DNA of 64,000 bases from positions 310,001-374,000 of the forward strand of contig CBFDEM010000058.1 of NCBI GenBank assembly GCA_965603825.1, in the 5' to 3' direction. A program made the position numbers and the translations under genes. Of this stretch, positions 20,994-35,213 are shown one piece after another. Under the pieces are notes generated by a model, which was not told the DNA's origin, searched no databases, and was given only the letters and a program-made list of their open reading frames with translations. Each line of letters opens with the position of its first letter. The first letter of the stretch is position 1. This stretch comes from Blepharisma stoltei ATCC 30299. Its lineage: Eukaryota; Protista; Ciliophora.

Positions 20994-22211
20994 ATGGCAT
21001 CTTGGAACCTATCATCTTCACAACGTGCTAAAGACACGATAAACCCTATCAGAGAAACAGTAGCCACCATTCTTCTTCCTACAGATTTTCATCTCCCCAC
21101 TTATTCCTTAGCCCTAGGTGATCCTTCAGTGTTTCCTGATTTCGCTGTGAACCCTATTTTCACAAGAATCGCTCAAGAAAATCTTCTGTCAGGAACTGGA
21201 AATGGCTACTGTTTAGCAGCAGGACCTAGGCCAGCCCGTGAAGCATTAGCAAGACAATTTTCTTATGAAAATATTCAGCTTAGTTGGGAAGATGTAATCC
21301 TTGATATCGGTGGAAGCGGAGCAATTCATACAGCCATGCAAGTATTTTTAAACCCAGGAGACAATATTCTAATCCCAGCCCCTGGCTTTCCTCTTTATAA
21401 GTGTATGGCAGGCAATTTAAGTGCAGAAGCAAGACTATATTCATTAAGACCTGACCATGGTTGGGAAATAGACTTCAATGACTTAGACAGACTAGTTGAT
21501 GAAAGGACAAAATTGCTAGTCATCATAAACCCATCAAACCCTTGTGGAAGCGTTTTTACAAAGGAGCATTTATTAGAAATTTTAGATTGGGCAGAAAGGC
21601 ATAAAATCTGTATTTTAGCTGACGAAGTCTATACAGGAATGAGCTATGGGAAGCCTCACATCCCAATCGGATCCTTAACTGATGAAGTCCCTGTTTTTAC
21701 TATTGGTGCTATGAGCAAAATGTATTTGGTGCCTGGATGGAGATGTGGCTGGCTTATTGTCTATGATAAACACAATAAATGTGCAGAATTCAGAGATGCG
21801 ATATTAAAAGTAAAAAATATGCTTTTGCATCCTGCTCCTTTTATCGCGAACTCTATACCAGCAATTATAGAACAAACTCCAGAAAACTATATGAGTGAAG
21901 TTATGCAAAAAGTTAAGGAAAGAGCTGAACTTGTGTACCAAAAAATTCAAGAAACTCCAGGATTATCAATGCAGATGCCTGAAGGAGCTCTATACTGCAT
22001 GATTTCTATAGACTTAGAAGCTTTTGAAGATTTTGGAAATTCAATTATTTTTGCTGAAAAACTAGCAAGGGAACAAGGAGTCTTGGTGCTTCCTGGAGAA
22101 AGTTTCATGAGTCATAGAGCCTTTAGAGTTGTTCTATGCCAGTCAAGAGCTGTTCTTGAAGAGTGCATGGACAGAATTAAAAATTTCGCAGCAGCACATC
22201 ATAAAAAATAA
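20994..22211 (+). CDS. TAT: Tyrosine/aromatic aminotransferase (class I PLP), 405 aa
   Basis: LGDPS.FP, NGY, PAPGFPLY, INPSNPCGSV, ADEVY, PLP-lysine motif GAMSKMYLVPGWRCGW, LPG..F..RV. Confidence 0.92.
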   Translation: MASWNLSSSQRAKDTINPIRETVATILLPTDFHLPTYSLALGDPSVFPDFAVNPIFTRIAQENLLSGTGNGYCLAAGPRPAREALARQFSYENIQLSWEDVILDIGGSGAIHTAMQVFLNPGDNILIPAPGFPLYKCMAGNLSAEARLYSLRPDHGWEIDFNDLDRLVDERTKLLVIINPSNPCGSVFTKEHLLEILDWAERHKICILADEVYTGMSYGKPHIPIGSLTDEVPVFTIGAMSKMYLVPGWRCGWLIVYDKHNKCAEFRDAILKVKNMLLHPAPFIANSIPAIIEQTPENYMSEVMQKVKERAELVYQKIQETPGLSMQMPEGALYCMISIDLEAFEDFGNSIIFAEKLAREQGVLVLPGESFMSHRAFRVVLCQSRAVLEECMDRIKNFAAAHHKK

Positions 22212-22288
22212 TTAAAAGTTGCATTAACTGCATTTATTGCTCGAAAAATATAAATATAAAGCATTTTTAAAATTATAAAATAAATTAG

Positions 22289-23425
22289 TTAATAATAAGT
22301 TGTTATCATCAGCTTTCTTGTATTTTCAATCAAGCTATTTAAAAACGACTCAATAGAAGACCCACCAGTTCCCTTAGTGCTGCCTCCTTGACTTGGCTTG
22401 ATAATATATTGATAAGCAAGTTTGCAATGCGTTTTTCTAAAATTAGCAAATTCTTCTATCACTGAATTCCATTCGTCAACTGCATCCAAATCAACGACAG
22501 TTTTCCTGATATCTTTTGGCCTGCTTTTTTCAACGAAAGCGATAAAGTCTCTATGCTCTTTTTTCATATATGGGAAAATCCCTGATAAAAATGTATCATT
22601 AGAATTCAAAGTAAAAATTGCATCGATAAGCCGAACCAAGGGGCTTTGGGCTGCAGTTGACCCCATTAGCTTTAGAGGAGTCTCAGAAACTCCTTCATAT
22701 ATTACACCGTCAAAAGACCCTAAGTATCTTCTGAAGCCAAAATAAAATACATTTGGATCTACCCTTTGAAAGACCAATGACAAAGCCTTTTTCATATCTT
22801 TTAATGTATCAACAAAAATTTTTAGTGAATTTTTGACGTCTTCCTCATTTTTGGTTTGGATTCCATTATAAAATGTCGGAATTGTTTCAATTATTGCATT
22901 GCCCAAGTACTCAATATAAGTCCCACAGTGGTAAAAGAAGGTCTCGTCATCAGTCCCTGAGAAAGTAAACAAGCTATCAATATTATCTGGGTGGAATTCC
23001 TTCGATTCATCTTTCAACTTCCAGTTTTGGAAATTCGTGGAAACAATTGAAATCATAGGGGCACGATCTAAATGATTGCTTAACCTGCAAAAAGGAACTG
23101 AAATATTTGATGGAATTCTCTGAGAAGGAGTGCTTGAATGCCAATAATAAGCTGAAGCAAGATACGCATGAAGTAGAGTTGCGAGCTCAATTTGATCATT
23201 ATCGTCTATTATTAAGGATGGATCAAACCTAGGCAGCTTCCTTATTTGGCTTGCTAAGTCTGATGGGTTGTCCTGGATTGACTTGACTAAGTTGTAGTGA
23301 GGCAAAAGTGCTTCAGATGTTGGAATGCTCAAAGGTGGAATTGACTGGACAAAGGATTGGATTGGGAGAGACTGAAATGATAAGAGAGAGCTCGGGAGGG
23401 TGCTGAAAAGCCTTGAAAAATTCAT
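22289..23425 (-). CDS. IDO: Indoleamine 2,3-dioxygenase, 378 aa (probably the 5-hydroxytryptophan-preferring isoform)
   Basis: AYYW, P.I....NW, FSGTDDETFF, DPNVFY..FR.YL, GSTAAQS loop, proximal heme His in FRKTH..AYQYI, GTGG motif; residue 131 is Asn. Confidence 0.93.
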   Translation of the reverse strand: MNFSRLFSTLPSSLLSFQSLPIQSFVQSIPPLSIPTSEALLPHYNLVKSIQDNPSDLASQIRKLPRFDPSLIIDDNDQIELATLLHAYLASAYYWHSSTPSQRIPSNISVPFCRLSNHLDRAPMISIVSTNFQNWKLKDESKEFHPDNIDSLFTFSGTDDETFFYHCGTYIEYLGNAIIETIPTFYNGIQTKNEEDVKNSLKIFVDTLKDMKKALSLVFQRVDPNVFYFGFRRYLGSFDGVIYEGVSETPLKLMGSTAAQSPLVRLIDAIFTLNSNDTFLSGIFPYMKKEHRDFIAFVEKSRPKDIRKTVVDLDAVDEWNSVIEEFANFRKTHCKLAYQYIIKPSQGGSTKGTGGSSIESFLNSLIENTRKLMITTYY

Positions 23426-23809
23426 TTATACACTTGATTGTTTGTCGCGAATAAATCGACCAATTTTCCTCGCTTGAAGATCACATTTTTATTATGTTTA
23501 TTATTTTAGATAAATTAGTTGCCATTTTTCCTCATCTGAAGATTAGACTTAAAAATAATTATTTAAATAGATAATTTAGTTATTTAAATCTTTATATTTC
23601 TTATATTAAATTATTTGAAAGGAAATTAGATAGCTTATATTAGTATATATAAAGCTGTATTGGTTTACTAATTTTTTAATTTCTGACTTTAGTTTACTTT
23701 TAACGTATGAGTACTTTGCTTTAGTTATCTTCTCTAATTATAATATTATAACTTAAAATTAATCGATCTTACTTATCTAGATTTCATCTTATTTATTTAA
23801 TAGAAAATA

Positions 23810-26800
23810 TTATTCTATGCCCAAAATTTTATTGATCAAAAAATTTGATTCTTGAGACCCTGTATGCATAATCATTTTTCTGAATAATGATTTTTCTTTG
23901 TTTATCAACTCATAAGGTGTTCCAACCTCTTTGCAGCTCCCTTTATTCATAACAATTATTCAATCAGAATCAACAATAGTCCTCAGCCTATGAGCAACAA
24001 TTAGAAGTGTGCTGTCTCCCAACATTTTTTTAATCTGATTTTGTATGAATTTATCAGTTTCAGGGTCCACGTTCGCAGTTGCTTCATCCATCATTACAAT
24101 TTTATTTTTCCTGATAAGAGCTCTCGCTAAGCATACAAGCTGCTTTTGGCCTGATGATAAATTTCCTCCTTCACCAGTTAGGAGTGAATTGATTCCATTT
24201 GGGAGGGATCTGGCTAACTTATTAAGCTTTGTTTCCTTTAGAATTTTTAAAATTTCTTCTTCTGAGTGCTCATGGAATGGGTCAATATTATCACGAAAAC
24301 TTGCCAAAAATATGGTAGGTGACTGAGGGATTACAGACATTTGCTTTCTTAACTGATGAAGTCCTGCATTCATATAATCTTGGCCATCAATATAAATAGT
24401 TCCTGAAGAAGGATTTATGAGCCTAAAAAGAACTTGCATTATTGAAGATTTTCCAGCCCCAGTCCTGCCAATAATTCCAACTTTTTGTCCAGGCTCAATA
24501 GTGAATGAAAGATTTTTCAGTGCATAAGGATAGTTTTCCCTATATCTCATATATAATTCTTTTACTTCGATTTTTCCTTTATCTATTATGAAGGGATTTT
24601 CCGATTCAAATTTTCCTTCCTCTTGAATATCAGCATACTCAATTAACCTTTGTGGAGAAGTCATTAAATTTTCTACCTCAGCTACTGTTTTGGCCCAAAA
24701 AGTAATGACTGTTGCCATCACAATTGATAAAGAAATGCTCATTGCCCCTAAACTTGAATTTATATGATCCTTATATAATACTAATATGACAACATTGAGA
24801 ATGTTTATGAACAAGGCACCAAGTTCTGTATATCCTTGATATGTTTTTAACACAACGTGGTAGCTTAGTAAGGATCTTTCACTATGAATTATTGCATTCT
24901 TCATGTCATCAAGAAATTTATTTTGGAGATTTAGTGCCCGAATGGTTACCAAGCCATTGATTGTAGAATTTGCTAAAGAAAGGATTGGACTTTTAGAAAT
25001 CAGCTCAATTTTTCGTAAGTCTTTTGTTATGGGTACAACTTTTTTGGCGATGATAAAGACATATATAAAAAAAATAAAAATAACAGCTATATTGGGAGGA
25101 GCAACAATAGATAATACAATAATGTTTCCCAAAACTGTTGCAGACTGAATTACGGCTTCTGAAAAGTATCTAAGAAGAACTTCATCAGTCATTAAGGTAT
25201 CTTTCGAAAACCGATTTATCATCCTTCCAGTAGGATTTTTATCAAAAAAGACACTTTCTGTCAGGGTCATTCCTTGTAAAGCTTTATTATGGATTCTCTC
25301 ACCAGCCATAAGCAGCCCTATGCTCATTATATAAGATCTTGCGAATGTTAAAACATAATTCACACCAACTATTATTGCAAAAATTCATAAATAGAATGAG
25401 TCAGTTTGATCATCATCTGATGCTTTTGCCCATAATGCCAGCCACCAAATTACAGCTAGGTATGATACTTGCCCAGCAGCCACAATTAGCATGACAATTA
25501 CTATAACTATCCATGATCCGAATCCATATCATAAATATTTATAGTATATTTTCCAAGGTGTAGACCCCTCTGCACTCTCTTCTTCTTCAATTGCTATTTT
25601 ATCTTTCACTTCCACTTTTGCGTTAGTTTCTTTTGCTGCATCTTTTTTATCCTCATCTTCTTCATTATCTTGCTCAAGAAGCTCCCCTACAATGTGAAAA
25701 ACATCTTCTCTTGCTCTTAACTCTTCATAGTTTCCAAAAAACAACTGATTTCCACCATCCAACACCAAAATTTTGTCAGCTTGAGAGATGTAGTGAATTT
25801 GGTGCGTTGCAAGAATAACAGTTTTATCTTTTAGATACTCTTTGATGCAGGTGTTAAATAGATATGAACTTACCTCAGCATCTACTGCACTTAAAGGATC
25901 ATCAAGCAAGATTATTTCTCGGTTGGTATAAATTGCTCTGGCTAGGCTTATCCTAGCTTTTTGTCCGCCACTTAGGGTAATCCCACGATCACCTATCACA
26001 GTTTCATCCCCATGCGCAAAACTTTCTAAATCTTGTTCAAGAGAGCAGACTTTGATTATTTTATGATAGAGCTCTTCACTATATTCCAAGCCCATCAGGA
26101 TATTATCTTTGATACTGCCTGATATAATTCATGGATTTTCTCCAGCATAAGTGATTTCCCCATTAATTTTCATTTTTTCACCGTATGTTTGGATTTCTTG
26201 TAATAAGCCCATAAATAAGCTACTTTTTCCGCTTCCAACCTGCCCTACAACCATTAATAGCTCGCCTGGTTTTATTTTAAAATTAATATTGCAAAGTGTT
26301 GGCCTAGGAGTTTCCTCCGTCAATCTTGGGTTTTCATCATCATAACTTGAAGAGACTTGGTCATATCTAGGTGATTTTGCATAGTCATTCTGATTTCAAG
26401 AATCATTTCATGAAAAACTTAGATCTTTAGCTACTACAGAATATTCTTCATCACGTTCATAAATAATATTCAATTTTTTCTTCATTAATAATATATCTGT
26501 AATTCTTCTCATAGAAGATTTAAATAAAAATAGCATGAGAACTCCGCTTGCTCCCCAATTGGAAATTAAGCTATGAGCCATCATCAGCACAGTAACTCCT
26601 GCAAACACAACTCCTGGCTCTAGAGAGTGTCCCATAGAAACATAAATTAAAAATGTCACAAAAAGCACAAGGCCAGTTCCACCATTTCCCATTGATCTAT
26701 TTAACGATGAATAAGTTAACCCTTTCAAACATTTACTTATTTCTTCTTTCCTTTTTTCAAAAATCAAATCTAAATAAGGACTTTCCCAACCATATAATTT

Positions 26801-27616
26801 TACAATCCTGATCCCTTCGATTAAGTTTGTGATCATTTTAATACGTGAATCACTGACTAAAGCAATTTTTCCTCGGTATTTGCCATTAAGGACACTTAAA
26901 AAATATATGAACGGATAATGAAAAATAATAACAATAAGCCCAATGATACCTGCTGGCCCAATATAAAAGCCTAAGATTAAAAACGATCCGATAAGGAATG
27001 GTACTGCTGCAAATAAATAAACAATATAGACAATGACATCCATAAATTCCAACTCAGAAACTATTACATTAGCCAATTTCCCTTTTATATTACCTTGGGA
27101 TAGCTCCATATTTGATATCCCAAAGAGTTTATCATAGATTAAACGAGGTACAACTGATTTCAGCCTTATTACTAGCATAGTCACTCTAAAAATGCATAAA
27201 TTTCACATATAATATGATATAAGGGCAACTGCTCCATATGCAATTGTGTAGCCGGCTCCTTCATAAGCTTCTGCATTGCTATCATTCATATATCTAGCTA
27301 AATATATGACAAGTATAGCTTGAATTAGTCCGAAACTTTGTGACAAAATACCTGGGGCAAAAATTTTAATTACTTCTCACCCTATAACTCTTAAGAGCGC
27401 CCGTTCAAAACTCGGCTTTTCCTTTTTCAGTTCTTTTTGTCAAGATTCTTCTATTAATTCAAGATCTTTATCAAACCGGAGGCGTTTTGGGATTTGAGCT
27501 AAATTTTCTGTGGTTGCCTTTTGCTTTCTTCAAAAAGATATTAGAGGAAATCCTCAGCTCATAACTAGATCGTTGAAAATAGTTGCCTTATCATATAAAA
27601 ATTCTGGAGTTTCCAT
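23810..27616 (-). CDS. ABCC/MRP-family (ABCC4-like) full ABC exporter, 1268 aa
   Basis: One frame across TGA codons from ATG 27616 to TAA 23810-23812. NBD1: [30 protein letters not shown]2: [24 protein letters not shown]. Two TMDs, no TMD0. Confidence 0.94.
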
Positions 27617-28572
27617 TGATGCTAGATGCGTATAAAACTTATACTTAAGAAAATTATTAATCAAAGAAAATTGGGAATTTCTGCTCAGATGTGAAATCCT
27701 ATAGGTAAAAATTAGCCATTCAGTTAAGACTATGATATTCCTAATATTTATTTAAGCTTATTAAGTATAAGGCAGATCTGCAATAATTATTACTTATAGT
27801 ATGGTGCCATTACAGGCAGGTATTAAAATCTTATGGAGTATTTCTTTTTAATTTCAAGTTAAATTAATATTGTTTTAGGATAAATTTAAACTGCTTGCTC
27901 TGTCTTCATGATCGAACAAGCCTTTTTGCTTGTTTAAGAAGGAGAGTGTTCAATAGCTATGGATAAATAAATGTATAGGATGAATTTAAGCAGTAATTAA
28001 AAATTATCAGTGCATACCTTTAATTCCACTTAACCTTAGACAAATTTTCAATCGTTATTTGGAAGTTTTGTAAAACAGTTTATTGGCCCTAATATTTATA
28101 TTTAAATTTAATAGATTGATGATAATGCTATGTCCATAATAAATTCAAGCTGCTTTTCTTTATAGTTTAACAAGGGAAAATCTATTTAAAATTTTTTATC
28201 GAGCTGCAATTTTAACGTGAATTTAAAGTTTATACTATAAAATATATAGGATAAATTGAAGCATCCAAATCATAGGCTAATATAACGACTTCAAGCCAGA
28301 AGCCTGCTATTAAAGTAGCAATTTAAGTGTTTATCTTAATAAATTTTAAATTGAAAGATTCAATAATTAAGCAAAAATGCATCTTGAATCTCAGTATTTT
28401 CCAAAAGATTTCATAAATATATAAATCTTAATTTTGCCACTCATCAAAAATTTTCATAAATAATTTATTAATTATATTTATAAATGCAAAATAGACATAT
28501 TAGCATTAAATAAAAGTCAAGAAAGGCTATAAAAAACCCCAACTTTTTCATATTATATATATTTTAATTATT

Positions 28573-29706
28573 CTATGAAAAAGTTTTACCTTGGAACGAG
28601 AGACTTAGTGAAGAATTTGTTTTTTCGTGTTCTGATGTTCGCAGAATCCTCACGCTAGAATTTTCTTTTGCTTCTCTCTCCACGATACTTTGAGGAATCA
28701 GGGTATAGACTTCCACTTGTTCTTCATAGCCAACTATTTCTGGCTCTTTACAATCTTCAATTAGACTGGATGATGGAATTATTTTGTCCACATCCCCTTG
28801 CTTATAGTTTGAAAAGAGTTTAATTTCATGCGACTCGTTATATAGCTCAGAGCTAGTTAATTGGCTAGTTGCTAATGGATTTGAACTACTATGGGTGGGG
28901 GTAGAATTTTCTTCTGAGTTTTCTTTGTTTTTGTTTTCAGTACTCTGACTATTTCATTGATTTAATGATTTAACGTCCGGACTCCCAGGAGTGCTTTCCC
29001 CATCTCTATAGCTTGTGTTTCTGCTATTCGAATTAGAATCAATGCCATTTTTAGATATTATTTTTTCCTTGTCTTCTCTCTCATGAATATATTTATTATG
29101 CTCTTCAAAGTTGAGATCAATAGCCGATTTTCGATTTGTAGTTGGAGGAGAAGCATCTCCTGTAACTACTTCATATAATAACTCACCCGTTTCGTTTTTC
29201 TTAAAAGCTTTTTGAAGGACTTTCAAGATTATAAAAGATAAAATTTCTATTGCAGCCCTAAAGACAATAAAGCAATAGGTGGAGAAAAATGCAATAGAGA
29301 GCCCTGAATCTTTGCTGTTGTTAATTTTATCATCAAGATGAAGACAAAAAATAAAGCCGATTATAATCAATGAGGAGTATCCGATAAGAAGCAGCCATCC
29401 TATAATTTGGGATAAAAGTTTTGATCGGCAAACTATTCTGTGCTTTTTAAATATACTTTGTATTAACATCATAGAGAAATCTATTAAGAGGACTATCCCA
29501 GATACAAATAAATATTCTGGAATGTAGCTATTTTTGATAAGATTGCTATTGTGAATTATAGTGTAAATTGCAGTAGCAAGGCAAGTAGTAGCTAAAAGTA
29601 GTGTAAATATTGGAAATATAAAAGATCCGTAGTAATTCATCGGCTCAGGATTTGAGGATAAGCCTGCATCTGGATTATTTTGAGAAAGGGAAGAATTACT
29701 TTCCAT
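28573..29706 (-). CDS. Orphan membrane protein, 377 aa (4 N-terminal TM helices plus disordered C-tail)
   Basis: ORFs 28954-29706 and 28573-28791 share a frame across TGA 28954-28956; four hydrophobic segments. Confidence 0.8.
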
Positions 29707-30031
29707 TAATTATTTGAAACTAGGAGAAGGCATATTGAATAAGCAACTCTTATTTAATATCAAAATAAAGATTTAGCTTAAATCTATGAAGATTAAAACA
29801 GATGTTTTATATCATAAATGATCATGAAATAATATATATTTAATAATTTAGCTGCTAACTTATGTGCAAAATATGTGTCTCTAGCATGATAGATAATAAT
29901 TATAATTACGAGTATAAATATAAATATAAATAGGACGAAATAGATGAAAAAATTGAAGATGAAGATATTATGTGTTTCTTAAATAAACTTATTCTTTTTC
30001 TAAAGGTTAAAATTTTCAAAGAAATATTATT

Positions 30032-30964
30032 TTATATTAAGCTAAAGGCCTTCAAAGCTGATTTTTTCATCTCGGTGAAGTTTTTAGTCTTGAAATAAGC
30101 AGGCTGATATGAAGAAAGGGTAAAATCCATACTGAGGATTTTTTTAGTGTCCCAACCAATAAACTCACATTTATCTTTTTTTACATGAAAAATTTCTTTG
30201 CAAGACCCAAGGATACCTGCACCCAAAATTTTATCGCCTACGATTCCAAATTCTATTGAGTAAAAATAAATTTTTGCTAGTTTCGCAATGTCCTCTTCGC
30301 TTGCTCCCAGAGATTTCTTCCCAATTTCTTGAGAAAATTCAGCAATTTCTTCGTTTCCGAAGAGAGGGACATGCCCCATGAGCTCATGCACAACGTCAGG
30401 CTCAGGCGAGTAAAAAGGAACCGAAATGTGGCGAATATATCTCGTTGAGAAAAACACTCTATAAGCTAGCCCGTATAAAAAGGACCTAGCATTGATCATT
30501 CCTCCAACCGGAATAAGTTTGAAGCCAGTTTTTGTCCCTAATCAGTTGTTTATTTTTGAAAACTGTGGTATCTTTTCTCCTGTATAAATTCCCAAATTTT
30601 CTAACTCTTGGAGGTTTAACTTATGCTCATCACAAGCATAAAGATAATGAAGCTCTCTAAGCCTTGCGTAAAGGAGGCTTCAGGTTTTATTTGCTTGATC
30701 TGGATAGAAAACATCAGGAACTTCTGAATTAACTGAGGAGCTGCAATTTCTTACAACGCGAAGCCAATTCATATAGTCAATGTCGTCTAAGCCTGGATAA
30801 GAAATTCCAAGCTTTTCAAAAAAATTTTCGTAAGATTTATCTATAGTATCAAGATCAGATCGGGATCTTGGGTACCAGAAACTTTGGTGGAACGTTGCGA
30901 AAAATTGCTTTGTTGATCTGAAACTTAAGCTTCAAATCACCATAAATATTTTTTTCTCAAACAT
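30032..30964 (-). CDS. Biopterin-dependent aromatic amino acid hydroxylase, catalytic domain only, tryptophan-hydroxylase-like (start at 30964 or 30943)
   Basis: WYPRSRSDLD, KT(W=TGA)..LY..L, IPQF, TGF.LIPVGG, YIRH..P.YSPEPDVVHELMGH (Fe His ligands), YFYSIEFG (Fe Glu ligand), GAGIL, YQP.YF. Confidence 0.92.
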
Positions 30965-30981
30965 TAATACGTAATCAAAAT

Positions 30982-31698
30982 TTATATATTAATCTTAGGC
31001 GATAAATGTGTTTCCATATATGAACTCTCTGATGAGGAACTAAAACTATCATCAAATGACTGGAGCTCATTTTGTGCCTCAATTTTCTTTGGGAATAAAT
31101 TTATTTCAATTTTTGCGACACTTTGGTTTCTTTTCTTTTGCGGGAGAATTGATATTACTCTATTTTTCGGTTTTGTTAGATCAAGTCTTTTTACACTCAT
31201 CGAGCCTTCATTCCTTGAAGAATGAGGCATTTTTGTGTTTGAAATCATTCTCATAAATGGTCGAGATTTCGGAAACTCAACAGGATTCGATAGAAAAGTC
31301 CTTGGAGTTGGGTTTCTATTGGATATAATTAGCTTAGGAGACTTTCTTTTCGGACGTTTTTTGTAAATATAAGATCTCACCTCATTTTCTTGGTAGATTT
31401 CAGGGAACCTACTCGAAAATTTCGTTTCCGAGTTACAACGTTTATTAATCGGTTTTTTTAGGTCTTTTTTTTGCGATGATTTTTCAATGAAACTTTTTTC
31501 AATCAAATTTTTAAGCTCATCTAATACTTCTGACTCAGCTTGCCTATGTGACGGTTTATGCTTATTTCTATATGAATTAGACTCAGCTTTATTTTCTTGC
31601 TTCCTTTCATTTGACAGATCTCTGAAAAAAGGTGTGTTCCATAGTTTTCCTCTTGGTTTTAAAAAATCTAAATAGTTAGGTTTCTTTCAATATTCCAT
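30982..31698 (-). CDS. Basic low-complexity hypothetical protein, 238 aa
   Basis: ATG 31698 is in frame with ORF 30982-31506 via one TGA. Confidence 0.65.
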
Positions 31699-31868: not shown

Positions 31869-33848
31869 TTACCTTGCTCCAGAGCTATTCCAGTCAATAT
31901 TAAAAGATGAAGACTTCTGCGCTAATTGGACAACGACACTAAATATAAAATAAACAAATCTATTCACATAATTTCTTGGAGTTGCCACTGAAATTTGTCC
32001 AGCTCTTCTTCTCCCATGGATAACAGCTTTATAAGCAAGTTCCATATACTTTCAATAGTTAAATTCTGTCAAGAAATCAATGATTCCCATCGTATATATG
32101 TATTTTGGGTCAAGAGACTGGATATATCTCGCTGAGCTTTCATCACAATTCTTGCAAATTGCAAGCAGCAAGGAGTAATCCATTAGTTTGTGACTATACA
32201 AAAACTTTGAGTCGTTTACAATGATATCGACAATTCGAATTTTATCATCTTCAGAAAGCTCAAAAATATGCTTAAATTTAATTAAGTCCAAATCCTTCAG
32301 TGGACCGCTCGGTTTACCTTTATCGCAAGCTGTGCGGCCGACTGTTGAACCTTTGATATCAAACGTGAATAAAGGTTCTACCCCATAGAGGACATTTTGC
32401 ATAAGAATAATGTCTAGAGAAGTTACACCAGGAACTTTTATTGTATAGAGTCCATAAATCCTGCACAACATGGAATGAGGATTATTTTTTAAATGAATAT
32501 GGTAGTCTTTGAGGATTTTTCGCATAGTTTTCTTTTCCTTGCGCTTAATTGTTTTAATAGAAAGCCTATTGTCACTTGTAAACAAGAAAAAACTTCCGGA
32601 TTTTCCTGAGCTTTCGTCAACTTTAAACATATTTTCTTTATTCTCATATGGATCAAGGCTCATTAATGCATCTTCATATGATAAATTATAAATTTCCCTT
32701 ATGTCTTCAAAAATATCAGGTGCAAATTCTTTTATTACAACTTGTGGCAATTTTGAGTCGGCTATTCCCCAAATTTTGGCTGTGTCTTTTAAATAGTGAA
32801 AAAGCTTGTGCTTCTCCACTTTTAAATAGGGATTTCCATCAGTGAATTGGGTTTTTGAGTATTTTCTTCTCATAAATAGCCCATGCAGACTAGAAAAAAT
32901 ACAATAAGCCAGTTCTATATTTAATTTCCCAAATACAACAGCTGCAATTGGCAAATTTCAAGCATCATCAGCAGTCATATCTATTTCTTCGCGCTTAAAG
33001 ATTGCACATTTTTTAATTTTTTTCCAAAATAAAGGATCGCATGTACGAATGATCCCTAAAAAAAAGCCAGAGGACAAATAAGCTACAAGGGCAACTGTGT
33101 CTATATCAAAATTTACGTCATTAGACTTTTTCGAAAAATAGCTTAGGGTAGGCCACATTCATAGCAAAATAAACGCAGAAACATATAATATATGCCTTAT
33201 TAAATACTGCCGGCTGTGATCTGTAATCATTTTCAGACCTCTTGTGAACCTCCATGCCGCATAAATTACAGAAATCAGCCCTATTCCAAAAAAAACGACC
33301 AATAATATTTCAATAGCTCCAGATACTGCAATTTCGAGTCTATCTTTGTTTTCTGCAATGCATCTTGATATAAATTGGTTTTCCCAGTTGACATAGGAAA
33401 CAAAATAAGCTGTCGTCAAAAAAGTGGCGATATGGTAAAACTTTTTCCTTTTCTGTCCAGAAATAAACGGGTTGTACAAGGTGACAATTAGATCTAAGCA
33501 TATTGCAATGTTATAGCATAAACTTCCGACAATCCCAATTGATAGCATAACTTGATTAATTCCACACAGAATCAGAGAAATTGTTTGATGCCCAATTGTG
33601 TAGCCCAAGTGGTCAGCCAGTCCTGGGAGTAGTTGATAGATCGATATAACCGACTCAGTATCCCATACAAAAATTATGCTGTGGAAAGACATAATAATTT
33701 CGCATATGCTAAGACAAACAATCAGCCCTGAAGGATGTTGTCGAAGCTCTTTTGAGTGTAAAAAAGTAAGTACCACTAATCCGGAGAATAAAATATTCGC
33801 GCAGCCCAATGATGTGTATAGAGCTAAATCAGTGCTCTCTAATGTCAT
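31869..33848 (-). CDS. GPCR-PIP kinase fusion (cAMP-receptor-like 7TM plus phosphatidylinositol-phosphate kinase), 659 aa
   Basis: Three ORFs form one frame across TGAs. 7TM part: LRQHPSGLI, ILCGINQ, DLIVTLYNPF. PIPK part: FAPDIFEDIR, GKSGSFFLFT, IKTI, DIKGS, LKDLD, MDYSLL, GIIDFL. Stop is TAA at 31869-31871. Confidence 0.92.
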
Positions 33849-33854
33849 AAAAAT

Positions 33855-35213
33855 ATGCTAAAAATCGAAGCTGAAATTGTTTATTTTGAACACTGCATCC
33901 AATGTTCCTCCCACCGTTGGTGTACTAACCATGACGAAGAAAAATACAAATCTTACTTCAACGAGTGCAGAAATGCAATTGCTTCAAATTGCCGAGGGGT
34001 TAATGTAGTAGAAAACCAAATCCCATTAGGATTCAACACTAAGTTTATCGACATAAGTGAGCCGCTCAGGCCTGGAAAAAGCCATTTCCCAAGAATTGGG
34101 GCCTTTGAGGTTTATTTCAGAGGCAAATTAATCTATTCCAAATTGCAGACTGGGAAATGGCCATCTGCAACAAGACTTGCAGGTATGGTTAAGGACCTTA
34201 TGGAAGAAAAGAAGCAGCCAGTTCCTAAAGAAAAAGCCTTTAGCATAAAAAAGAGAAGATCGCAGAGCACCAAGCGAAGGCGCCCTGTAACTGATATGAA
34301 GAAAAAGATCAGAAAGAAGCCAAAAAAGGCGAAAAAAATTAGACATTTAGAAGAAGACTCCCATTTGACAAGTCAAAATGAAGAAAAACAGCAGGAGTAT
34401 GCATATAAAGTTGACAATTTTAAGATAAATAATAAAGAATTCCACGAAGACAGCCCGAAAGAGGGAACCTTGAACTTTGAAGAAAAACCCACAATAAAGG
34501 ACAAAAGCCCTAAAAATAACCATTTTTTATTGCCACAGACCACTAAGCCAGAAAGCAGTGCAAAGCATGATGAAAGCCACTCAAGTTCTTCATCAGGAGT
34601 TTTTCAGCCTCCCCAAGTCCCAAGAGGGCATCATTCTTTTAACGGCCAGTTGAAACAAAGTTCAGATGAATCTAATAGCGAGTACAATGAAGACTTTGAC
34701 GCAGGAGAAGAAGAAGCTCATGAGTCCCCTCACCAATCAAGCCATAGCTCAAGTCGCAAGCAAAGCCATGAGTCTAGGCACGAGTCAGATCATGAATCAG
34801 ACCAGGATTCAAAGCATGAATCAGACCATGAAGAATACGAGCAGGATTATGAGCAAGATTATGAGCAAGAAGACTACGAGCAAGACTATGAGGAGGAAGA
34901 AAACAAAGACGAGCACCCCAAGCGAGAAGTCACCAAAAGCTATAACGTCGACATACCAGTCGGAATGCCAGCTAAGAAAAAGATTACTTATCAAAACGTG
35001 AACTCCAACGACTCAGAATTCTTTATTCTTTCATCACATCCTGAGTTCATGGCTGTAAAAGATGAATATGTTACCATTAAACGAGGCATGAAAGAAAAAT
35101 TCCAACTGAAGTTCGAGCCAGTTGACGAGCCTGGAGAAAGGACTTATTATCTTTATATTGATAGAGATGGAGAACCTTGGGAATGCATCCAGATCAAAGC
35201 TGAATATCAATAA
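33855..35213 (+). CDS. Rdx (SelW/SelT-like) thioredoxin-fold protein with low-complexity linker and C-terminal Ig-like domain
   Basis: EHCIQC (CxxC) and PRIGAFEV....LIYSKL..GKWP Rdx signature; beta-rich C-terminus. Confidence 0.8.
   Translation: MLKIEAEIVYFEHCIQCSSHRWCTNHDEEKYKSYFNECRNAIASNCRGVNVVENQIPLGFNTKFIDISEPLRPGKSHFPRIGAFEVYFRGKLIYSKLQTGKWPSATRLAGMVKDLMEEKKQPVPKEKAFSIKKRRSQSTKRRRPVTDMKKKIRKKPKKAKKIRHLEEDSHLTSQNEEKQQEYAYKVDNFKINNKEFHEDSPKEGTLNFEEKPTIKDKSPKNNHFLLPQTTKPESSAKHDESHSSSSSGVFQPPQVPRGHHSFNGQLKQSSDESNSEYNEDFDAGEEEAHESPHQSSHSSSRKQSHESRHESDHESDQDSKHESDHEEYEQDYEQDYEQEDYEQDYEEEENKDEHPKREVTKSYNVDIPVGMPAKKKITYQNVNSNDSEFFILSSHPEFMAVKDEYVTIKRGMKEKFQLKFEPVDEPGERTYYLYIDRDGEPWECIQIKAEYQ
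34765..34895 (+). repeat. Coding tandem repeats (12-nt units encoding HES(D/R) and EQDY)
   Basis: catgagtc/catgaatcagac and gagca(a/g)ga(t/c)ta(t/c) units within the Rdx gene. Confidence 0.7.

Follow-up and report, generated by a model that had tools for sequence, protein, structure and literature searches.

Phenylalanine and tryptophan hydroxylases (PAH and TPH) differ at a specificity site that is Trp326 in rat and human PAH and Phe313 in TPH1. The Trp326 of PAH is bulky, lies ~3 Å from the substrate site and hinders the conversion of tryptophan, while TPH keeps a Phe, which relieves the steric block to tryptophan binding at this site; PAH itself hydroxylates tryptophan weakly (PMC12315947). 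The structure of the Blepharisma pheromone gamone 2 (blepharismone), 3-(2'-formylamino-5'-hydroxybenzoyl)lactate, has been known since 1973, and in the literature that could be searched indoleamine 2,3-dioxygenase (IDO) is the sole enzyme tied to its pathway and no gene is named for the 5-hydroxylation step. According to its title, Sugiura et al. 2017 (a reference in PMC9942856) reported that an IDO is involved in pheromone biosynthesis. We found no published link of any Blepharisma hydroxylase gene to gamone 2 in the searchable literature, nothing beyond a reference-list entry in open papers for Blepharisma with IDO, 5-hydroxytryptophan (5-HTP) or TPH, and no hydroxylase or IDO terms in one supplementary text file of the genome paper.

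Here we describe a short aromatic amino acid hydroxylase gene of Blepharisma stoltei ATCC 30299 that provides a concrete candidate for this step. It lies in a window of 64,000 nt (C58:310001-374000), the whole stretch of DNA that was analyzed. Like animal TPH1/TPH2 (TIGR01270), the encoded protein has the hydroxylase fold, the iron triad, a Phe at the 313 site and a hydrophobic residue at the Ile366 site, and TIGR01270 is its best-scoring equivalog. Unlike the animal TPHs, it has neither an ACT domain nor a C-terminal tetramerisation coiled coil, Tyr235 is replaced by Met, Ser336 by Gly and the His at PAH position 264 by Phe, and it falls outside the TPH clade with a score of 271 bits, far under the 705-bit cut-off. 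With eukaryotic PAHs (Dictyostelium 5JK5 and the long Blepharisma paralogues) the protein shares the catalytic core and the pterin contacts, but Trp326 is Phe, Leu248 is Met, the ACT domain and oligomerisation tail are absent, and it sits on a long separate branch. In consisting of the catalytic core alone, with no regulatory domain, it resembles the monomeric bacterial PAH (Chromobacterium violaceum; TIGR01267); the bacterial enzyme, however, has Trp at the specificity site, and the Blepharisma protein scored ~105 bits to bacterial versus ~200 bits to eukaryotic structures. In bacterial PAH, an engineered Trp-to-Phe change was needed to favour tryptophan. Finally, B. stoltei IDO-I (BBA46264.1), although of a different enzyme family, is encoded in the same stretch and on the same strand, 6.6 kb from the hydroxylase.

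The B. stoltei ATCC 30299 macronuclear genome is 41 Mb in size and 66% AT, has tiny introns and uses UGA as a Trp codon (PMC9942806); the genome searched here comprised 41.46 Mb in 64 contigs. The length of long ORFs in the window rose from 39.7 to 67.1 kb once only TAA and TAG were taken as stops. Read in this code, the hydroxylase gene has the following features:

30032-30964, minus strand: short aromatic amino acid hydroxylase gene, 310 sense codons plus TAA, intronless, catalytic core only
30962-30964, minus strand: first ATG (Met1), beyond the RNA contig ends at 30923-30958
30941-30943, minus strand: alternative start (Met8), where the closest paralogue (303 aa) begins
30932-30934, minus strand: in-frame TGA, codon 11, read as Trp
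30680-30682, minus strand: in-frame TGA, codon 95, read as Trp and aligned with PAH Trp187
30542-30544, minus strand: in-frame TGA, codon 141, read as Trp

The site of TGA codon 95 is Trp in all 21 clade relatives aligned, Stentor included, and the public annotation model is identical to the ORF (310 aa). RNA contigs from four runs of one study spanned 30047-30958 without joints; these RNA-like sets are coded runs available as contigs only, with no sample identity, strain or time point given. Their coverage fell to zero in the intergenic intervals 27654-28610, 29595-30046 and 30959-30971, a dropout which indicates that the contigs behave as transcript assemblies and that the hydroxylase gene is therefore transcribed and unspliced. 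Translation could start at Met1 or at Met8, since the RNA contigs reach 30958 at most and the closest paralogue begins at the Met8 equivalent. Only 17 bp (30965-30981) separate the stop codon of the upstream gene from the first ATG of the hydroxylase, so that either the hydroxylase promoter must overlap the upstream neighbour or the true start is Met8.

The only Pfam match of the protein was Biopterin_H (PF00351, curated cut-off 22.7 bits), with 274 bits when read through TGA and 199 bits for codons 142-310 alone. The protein begins 29 residues ahead of the W-x-P-R motif (W30 = PAH W120), and the part that aligns with rat PAH extends from Trp120 to roughly residue 398-405, while the protein as a whole corresponds to PAH ~118-405. 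The protein has no ACT domain, dimerisation hairpin or tetramerisation helix, as judged by the lack of a PF01842 match, the end of the alignment and the structural model, which bears out the description of a stand-alone core in the sequence-only reading of this DNA. The AlphaFold model, built on a 21-sequence alignment, had a pLDDT of 88.6, with residues 1-27 alone disordered, and superposed on the catalytic domains of tyrosine hydroxylase (TH), TPH/TPH1 and PAH at TM 0.85-0.92 (Foldseek); this fold comparison did not discriminate among the three. The catalytic and pocket residues that could be placed by alignment are listed below:

30497-30499, minus strand: Met156, at the PAH Leu248 / TPH1 Tyr235 site
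30386-30388 and 30371-30373 (within 30371-30388), minus strand: iron ligands His193 and His198, aligned with PAH His285 and His290
Between His193 and His198, minus strand: Glu194, pterin contact, aligned with PAH Glu286
30263-30265, minus strand: Phe234 (TTT) in the motif IY-F-YSIEFG, at the PAH Trp326 (rat/human) / TPH1 Phe313 specificity site
30251-30253, minus strand: Glu238, third iron ligand, equivalent to PAH Glu330
30206-30208, minus strand: Gly253, at the PAH Ser349 / TPH1 Ser336 site; loss of the Ser side chain is typical of the clade

In addition to the iron ligands, the pterin contacts Phe162, Glu194 and Tyr233 (PAH Phe254, Glu286 and Tyr325) are kept, as is Arg178 (PAH Arg270), which binds the carboxylate of the amino acid substrate. 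Among solved structures, the protein matched PAH, TPH and TH at 197-211 bits by sequence, the best being Dictyostelium PAH 5JK5 (211), and bacterial PAH structures at only ~105 bits. The equivalog models gave 271 bits for TPH (TIGR01270), 241 for TH and 222 for PAH (TIGR01268), and every cut-off was missed (TIGR01270, 271 versus 705.5; TIGR01268, 222 versus 704.8; TIGR01267, 142 versus 264.75). The genome also encodes a pterin-4a-carbinolamine dehydratase and PTPS, for pterin recycling and synthesis. The retention of the iron triad, the Arg and the pterin contacts, together with the fold, the transcription and a dN/dS of 0.22 (see below), were all counted for an active enzyme, and there is good support for the prediction of an active, stand-alone hydroxylase.

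Residues at ten PAH positions (L248/H264/R270/T278/H285/H290/W326/E330/S349/V379) compared as follows:

Blepharisma short hydroxylase: M/F/R/S/H/H/F/E/G/L
Canonical PAHs: L/H/R/T/H/H/W/E/S/I
Vertebrate TPHs: Y/H/R/T/H/H/F/E/S/I

Both Tyr235 and Phe313 were present in all seven of the vertebrate TPHs examined; the Blepharisma protein has the Phe, but a Met for the Tyr. The site of TH Asp425 is Leu, a hydrophobic residue as in PAH, and not Asp. The sequence-only reading had singled out the Phe codon at 30263-30265 and the Met at the Tyr235 site, and alignment with PAH Trp326 and Leu248, respectively, placed both residues as it had proposed. Its further claim that the protein is no simple copy of TPH also held, as Tyr235 is replaced by Met and Ser336 by Gly. 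The changes equivalent to Thr278 to Ser and Ser349 to Gly would widen the pocket further. Based on the pocket residues and the profile scores, a preference of the enzyme for tryptophan is plausible.

A profile search of the contigs identified nine Biopterin_H genes in the Blepharisma genome, seven of which have Phe or Tyr at the Trp326 site. The remaining two (contigs 37 and 28) are long, ACT-bearing genes with Trp at this site and score best with the PAH model. The question of whether the genome has a separate canonical PAH, raised in the earlier reading, is thus answered, and the objection that the short gene might be the only PAH in the genome does not apply. The five short genes (299-323 aa), the one described here among them, have Phe at the site, except that the contig 27 copy has Tyr. 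For every short Blepharisma paralogue the TPH model was the best-scoring, and the PAH model was the lowest for the window gene and most of the short paralogues. All nine genes carry automatic names only, the visible labels (UniRef) being “phenylalanine 4-monooxygenase”, and no named TPH entry for a Blepharisma hydroxylase was found among the database names.

The two other long genes, on contigs 36 and 57 (C36:309685-310626 and C57:477268-478194), are ACT-bearing and have Phe at the Trp326 site and Met at the Leu248 site, as well as Arg at the Val379 site and Ile replacing Phe331. Judged by these residues, their pockets form another set that is not of the PAH type.

The short form was also found outside Blepharisma, with two copies in Stentor coeruleus and MMETSP and metagenome sequences bearing the same signature. 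Of the 21 short-clade sequences, 20 had Phe at the Trp326 site and one had Tyr, against 42 with Trp among the 46 long homologues of the first tree; Phe at this site is no chance feature. The signature is not peculiar to the window gene, for the whole short clade, Stentor included, and two long Blepharisma paralogues carry it. Since the clade is shared with Stentor, the TPH-like pocket is a trait of the clade and not a Blepharisma pheromone adaptation, and as the Phe/Met signature is found throughout the clade and in the two long paralogues, the residue alone singles out neither this gene nor gamone 2. The gene has a recent, 87%-identical duplicate on the same contig (C58:92 kb), which moved alone, without the neighbours seen in the window. 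The pair has a dN/dS of 0.22, indicating purifying selection, and differs at two pocket sites, M156I and F172L.

To place the gene among the ciliate hydroxylases, as the sequence-only reading had suggested, trees were built from the catalytic domain, with SH-aLRT supports from a quick search. The short clade was monophyletic with an SH-aLRT of 100 and a long branch. Within it, the five Blepharisma copies clustered (SH-aLRT 93-94) as sister to the Stentor-type group; the window gene and its C58:92 kb duplicate formed a pair, to which the contig 27 copy was sister. The seven vertebrate TPHs formed a clade that grouped with animal PAH- and TH-type sequences (SH-aLRT 93). Constraining TPH and the short clade together was 21.8 lnL units worse, with an AU p of 0.046, which is borderline, and the same constraint lacked power when TPH was represented by just one, partly duplicated sequence (p = 0.34). 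The long Phe-type genes shifted position between the two trees, and long-branch attraction in the hydroxylase trees is possible. The independent evolution proposed in the earlier reading was therefore favoured by the grouping of the vertebrate TPHs with animal PAH and TH types, but at borderline significance only; most likely, the Phe arose independently of animal TPH. The short, ACT-less clade would then represent a second, independent eukaryotic origin of a TPH-type pocket, which bears on the origin of serotonin-type and other 5-hydroxyindole metabolism outside animals.

The neighbours of the hydroxylase in the window are as follows:

20994-22211, plus strand: tyrosine/nicotianamine-family aminotransferase (TIGR01265, 395 bits, above cut-off; Aminotran_1_2, 187 bits)
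22289-23425, minus strand: IDO-I gene (Pfam IDO, 199 bits)
23810-27616, minus strand: ABCC/MRP-type ABC transporter (ABC_membrane and ABC_tran; best NCBIfam model MRP), transcribed
28573-29706, minus strand: gene with no Pfam match and hydrophobic N-terminal segments (by eye), transcribed
30982-31698, minus strand: basic protein with no Pfam match, directly upstream of the hydroxylase
31869-33857, minus strand: hydrophobic N-terminal region (by eye, no Pfam) fused to a PIP5K domain (172 bits)

The last of these, the second gene along from the hydroxylase, is a fusion of receptor-kinase-like type.

The IDO in the window was identical at 377 of 378 residues to GenBank BBA46264.1, “indoleamine 2,3-dioxyganese - I [Blepharisma stoltei]”. 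The earlier reading had spoken of a neighbouring IDO; its identity as IDO-I could be established, but the two genes, both on the minus strand, are not adjacent: 6,607 bp and two further genes lie between them. Residue 131 of IDO-I is Asn, and one contig 15 IDO has Glu at residue 132; Asn131 of IDO-I and Glu132 of IDO-III are reportedly specificity residues, according to the Sugiura-Yuasa-Harumoto group, and IDO-I is said to be the 5-HTP-preferring pheromone enzyme in the 2017 work of Sugiura et al. and a later paper of the same group. The aminotransferase is convergent with IDO-I, and their stops are 78 bp apart. Given nine hydroxylase genes and three IDO loci, the probability that some hydroxylase would by chance lie within 7 kb of some IDO is about 0.9%. 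Elsewhere in the Blepharisma genome, the four remaining short paralogues and the three remaining IDO genes were not close to one another, and at six short-hydroxylase loci of Stentor and others there were no IDO, aminotransferase or ABC neighbours.

A paralogous block on contig 21 (C21:750000-769999) has copies of six window genes, among them an aminotransferase (67% identical) and a calcium-dependent kinase (87% identical). It has no hydroxylase and no ABCC gene, and its IDO is a decayed fragment only (2 TGA, 4 TAA). We considered the contig 21 aminotransferase and IDO fragment as a duplicated pair and rejected this, as they are upstream and divergent there versus convergent in the window; because the orientation differs, they count as a repeated adjacency only.

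The conversion of tryptophan to gamone 2 needs a 5-hydroxylation, a formyl-retaining opening of the indole ring, a transamination and a keto reduction, and genes whose predicted functions cover three of these four activities lie within 10 kb, together with that of a possible exporter. We propose that the short hydroxylase would be an active, unregulated (no ACT domain) and probably monomeric pterin- and iron-dependent enzyme that most likely converts L-tryptophan to 5-hydroxytryptophan. This product would then be taken by IDO-I, encoded 6.6 kb away, after which the aminotransferase adjoining IDO-I and a further reductase could lead to blepharismone; the ABCC transporter, whose gene lies between those of IDO-I and the hydroxylase, is a candidate for its export. 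It is the position of the gene that would assign it to gamone 2, and by position it is the best-placed candidate for the first step of the pathway, with neighbours that suggest the remaining steps and an exporter. As a whole, the explanation that a TPH-like hydroxylase of the short clade feeds IDO-I toward blepharismone falls, in our judgement, a little short of an even chance. In its favour we also counted the presence of two canonical PAH genes for phenylalanine catabolism.

Several observations were counted against the gamone 2 reading. The TPH-like signature is clade-wide and is found in Stentor, from which, to our knowledge, gamone 2 is not known. Of the nine Blepharisma hydroxylases, seven have a residue other than Trp at the specificity site, so several could supply 5-HTP. 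With Met in place of Tyr235 and Gly in place of Ser336, the pocket also departs from that of TPH1. Two genes separate the hydroxylase from IDO-I, no 2-hydroxyacid or lactate/malate dehydrogenase was found within the 64-kb window as a reductase, and hydroxylase-IDO linkage is absent from the contig 21 block and the Stentor-type loci. Furthermore, the sequenced strain is of mating type I and secretes gamone 1 (PMC9942806), yet the hydroxylase was transcribed in all four runs, whose strain and time point are unlabelled. The nearest 2-hydroxyacid dehydrogenase pair (C58:403962-404486 and C58:408121-408642) lies outside the window, 64-68 kb from the hydroxylase; these genes are the nearest candidates for the missing keto-acid reduction.

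More tentatively, and with doubt prevailing, we suggest that the region 20994-30964 may be a biosynthetic gene cluster for blepharismone, in which a stand-alone tryptophan 5-hydroxylase of convergent origin is joined by IDO-I, the aminotransferase and the ABCC exporter. The hydroxylase would have been drawn from the short clade that Blepharisma shares with Stentor, and this clade would also supply a hydroxylase-decarboxylase route to monoamines. If true, the region would be the first case in a ciliate of a metabolic gene cluster that makes a small-molecule pheromone.

The decarboxylase in question is encoded on contig 27. At C27:138345-140639, the gene of the Tyr-bearing short hydroxylase immediately precedes, on the same strand, the best PF00282 match in the genome (aromatic amino acid decarboxylase type, 320 bits), and the two genes are a candidate two-step monoamine route. 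Based on this pair, the short clade may contribute to more than a single route of 5-hydroxyindole or monoamine metabolism.

The contig 27 pair also bears on an alternative, namely that the window gene encodes a tryptophan (or broad aromatic) hydroxylase that serves indoleamine or monoamine metabolism in general, for instance the synthesis of serotonin, as the clade may do in Stentor, with the proximity of IDO-I being coincidental or a loose co-location of genes for tryptophan metabolism. We regard this as possible, if on the unlikely side. The clade and its pocket are older than Blepharisma, the paralogue that is paired with the decarboxylase is the nearest older one in the tree, and the Stentor-type loci show no IDO linkage, all of which would be expected of such an enzyme. 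However, chance proximity to IDO-I has the low likelihood given above, an aminotransferase and an exporter suited to gamone 2 chemistry are encoded in this stretch, and the existence of five paralogues suggests that their functions have diverged.

The automatic annotation, by which the protein would be a phenylalanine 4-monooxygenase, perhaps an unregulated and organelle-targeted catabolic isozyme whose Phe and Met changes are neutral or tune its kinetics, appears unlikely to us. The UniRef name on the paralogues agrees with it, as do the best match by sequence among solved structures, Dictyostelium PAH, and the PAH-like hydrophobic residue at the TH Asp425 site, and the weak hydroxylation of tryptophan by PAH means that one residue does not fix specificity (PMC12315947). 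Against these points, the genome already has two canonical, ACT-bearing PAH genes of the Trp326 type, the PAH equivalog was the lowest of the three for the window gene and most of the short paralogues, and the Phe is kept in 20 of the 21 clade members. A different substrate, either tyrosine (to DOPA) or a later intermediate such as indole-lactate or a kynurenine-type compound, is quite improbable. In its favour, none of the three animal enzymes has the same pocket at the Tyr235/Leu248, His264 and Ser349 equivalents, the recent duplicates differ at pocket sites (M156I, F172L), and the literature searched does not establish in which order the steps of blepharismone synthesis occur. Against it, the TH Asp425 site is Leu and not Asp, the carboxylate-binding Arg is retained, and there is no evidence for such substrates in the hydroxylase family.

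Sequence variants were present among the RNA contigs. Run X2 had two synonymous variants in hydroxylase codons 185-186 (30407-30410), and runs X1 and X4 had a second contig variant with ~5% differences in the 28573-29706 gene (28674-28996). These may be alleles or represent a second strain of a mating time course. In addition, the N-termini of the hydroxylase and of IDO-I both have short Ser/Leu/Arg/Phe-rich stretches with few acidic residues, which could be targeting sequences.
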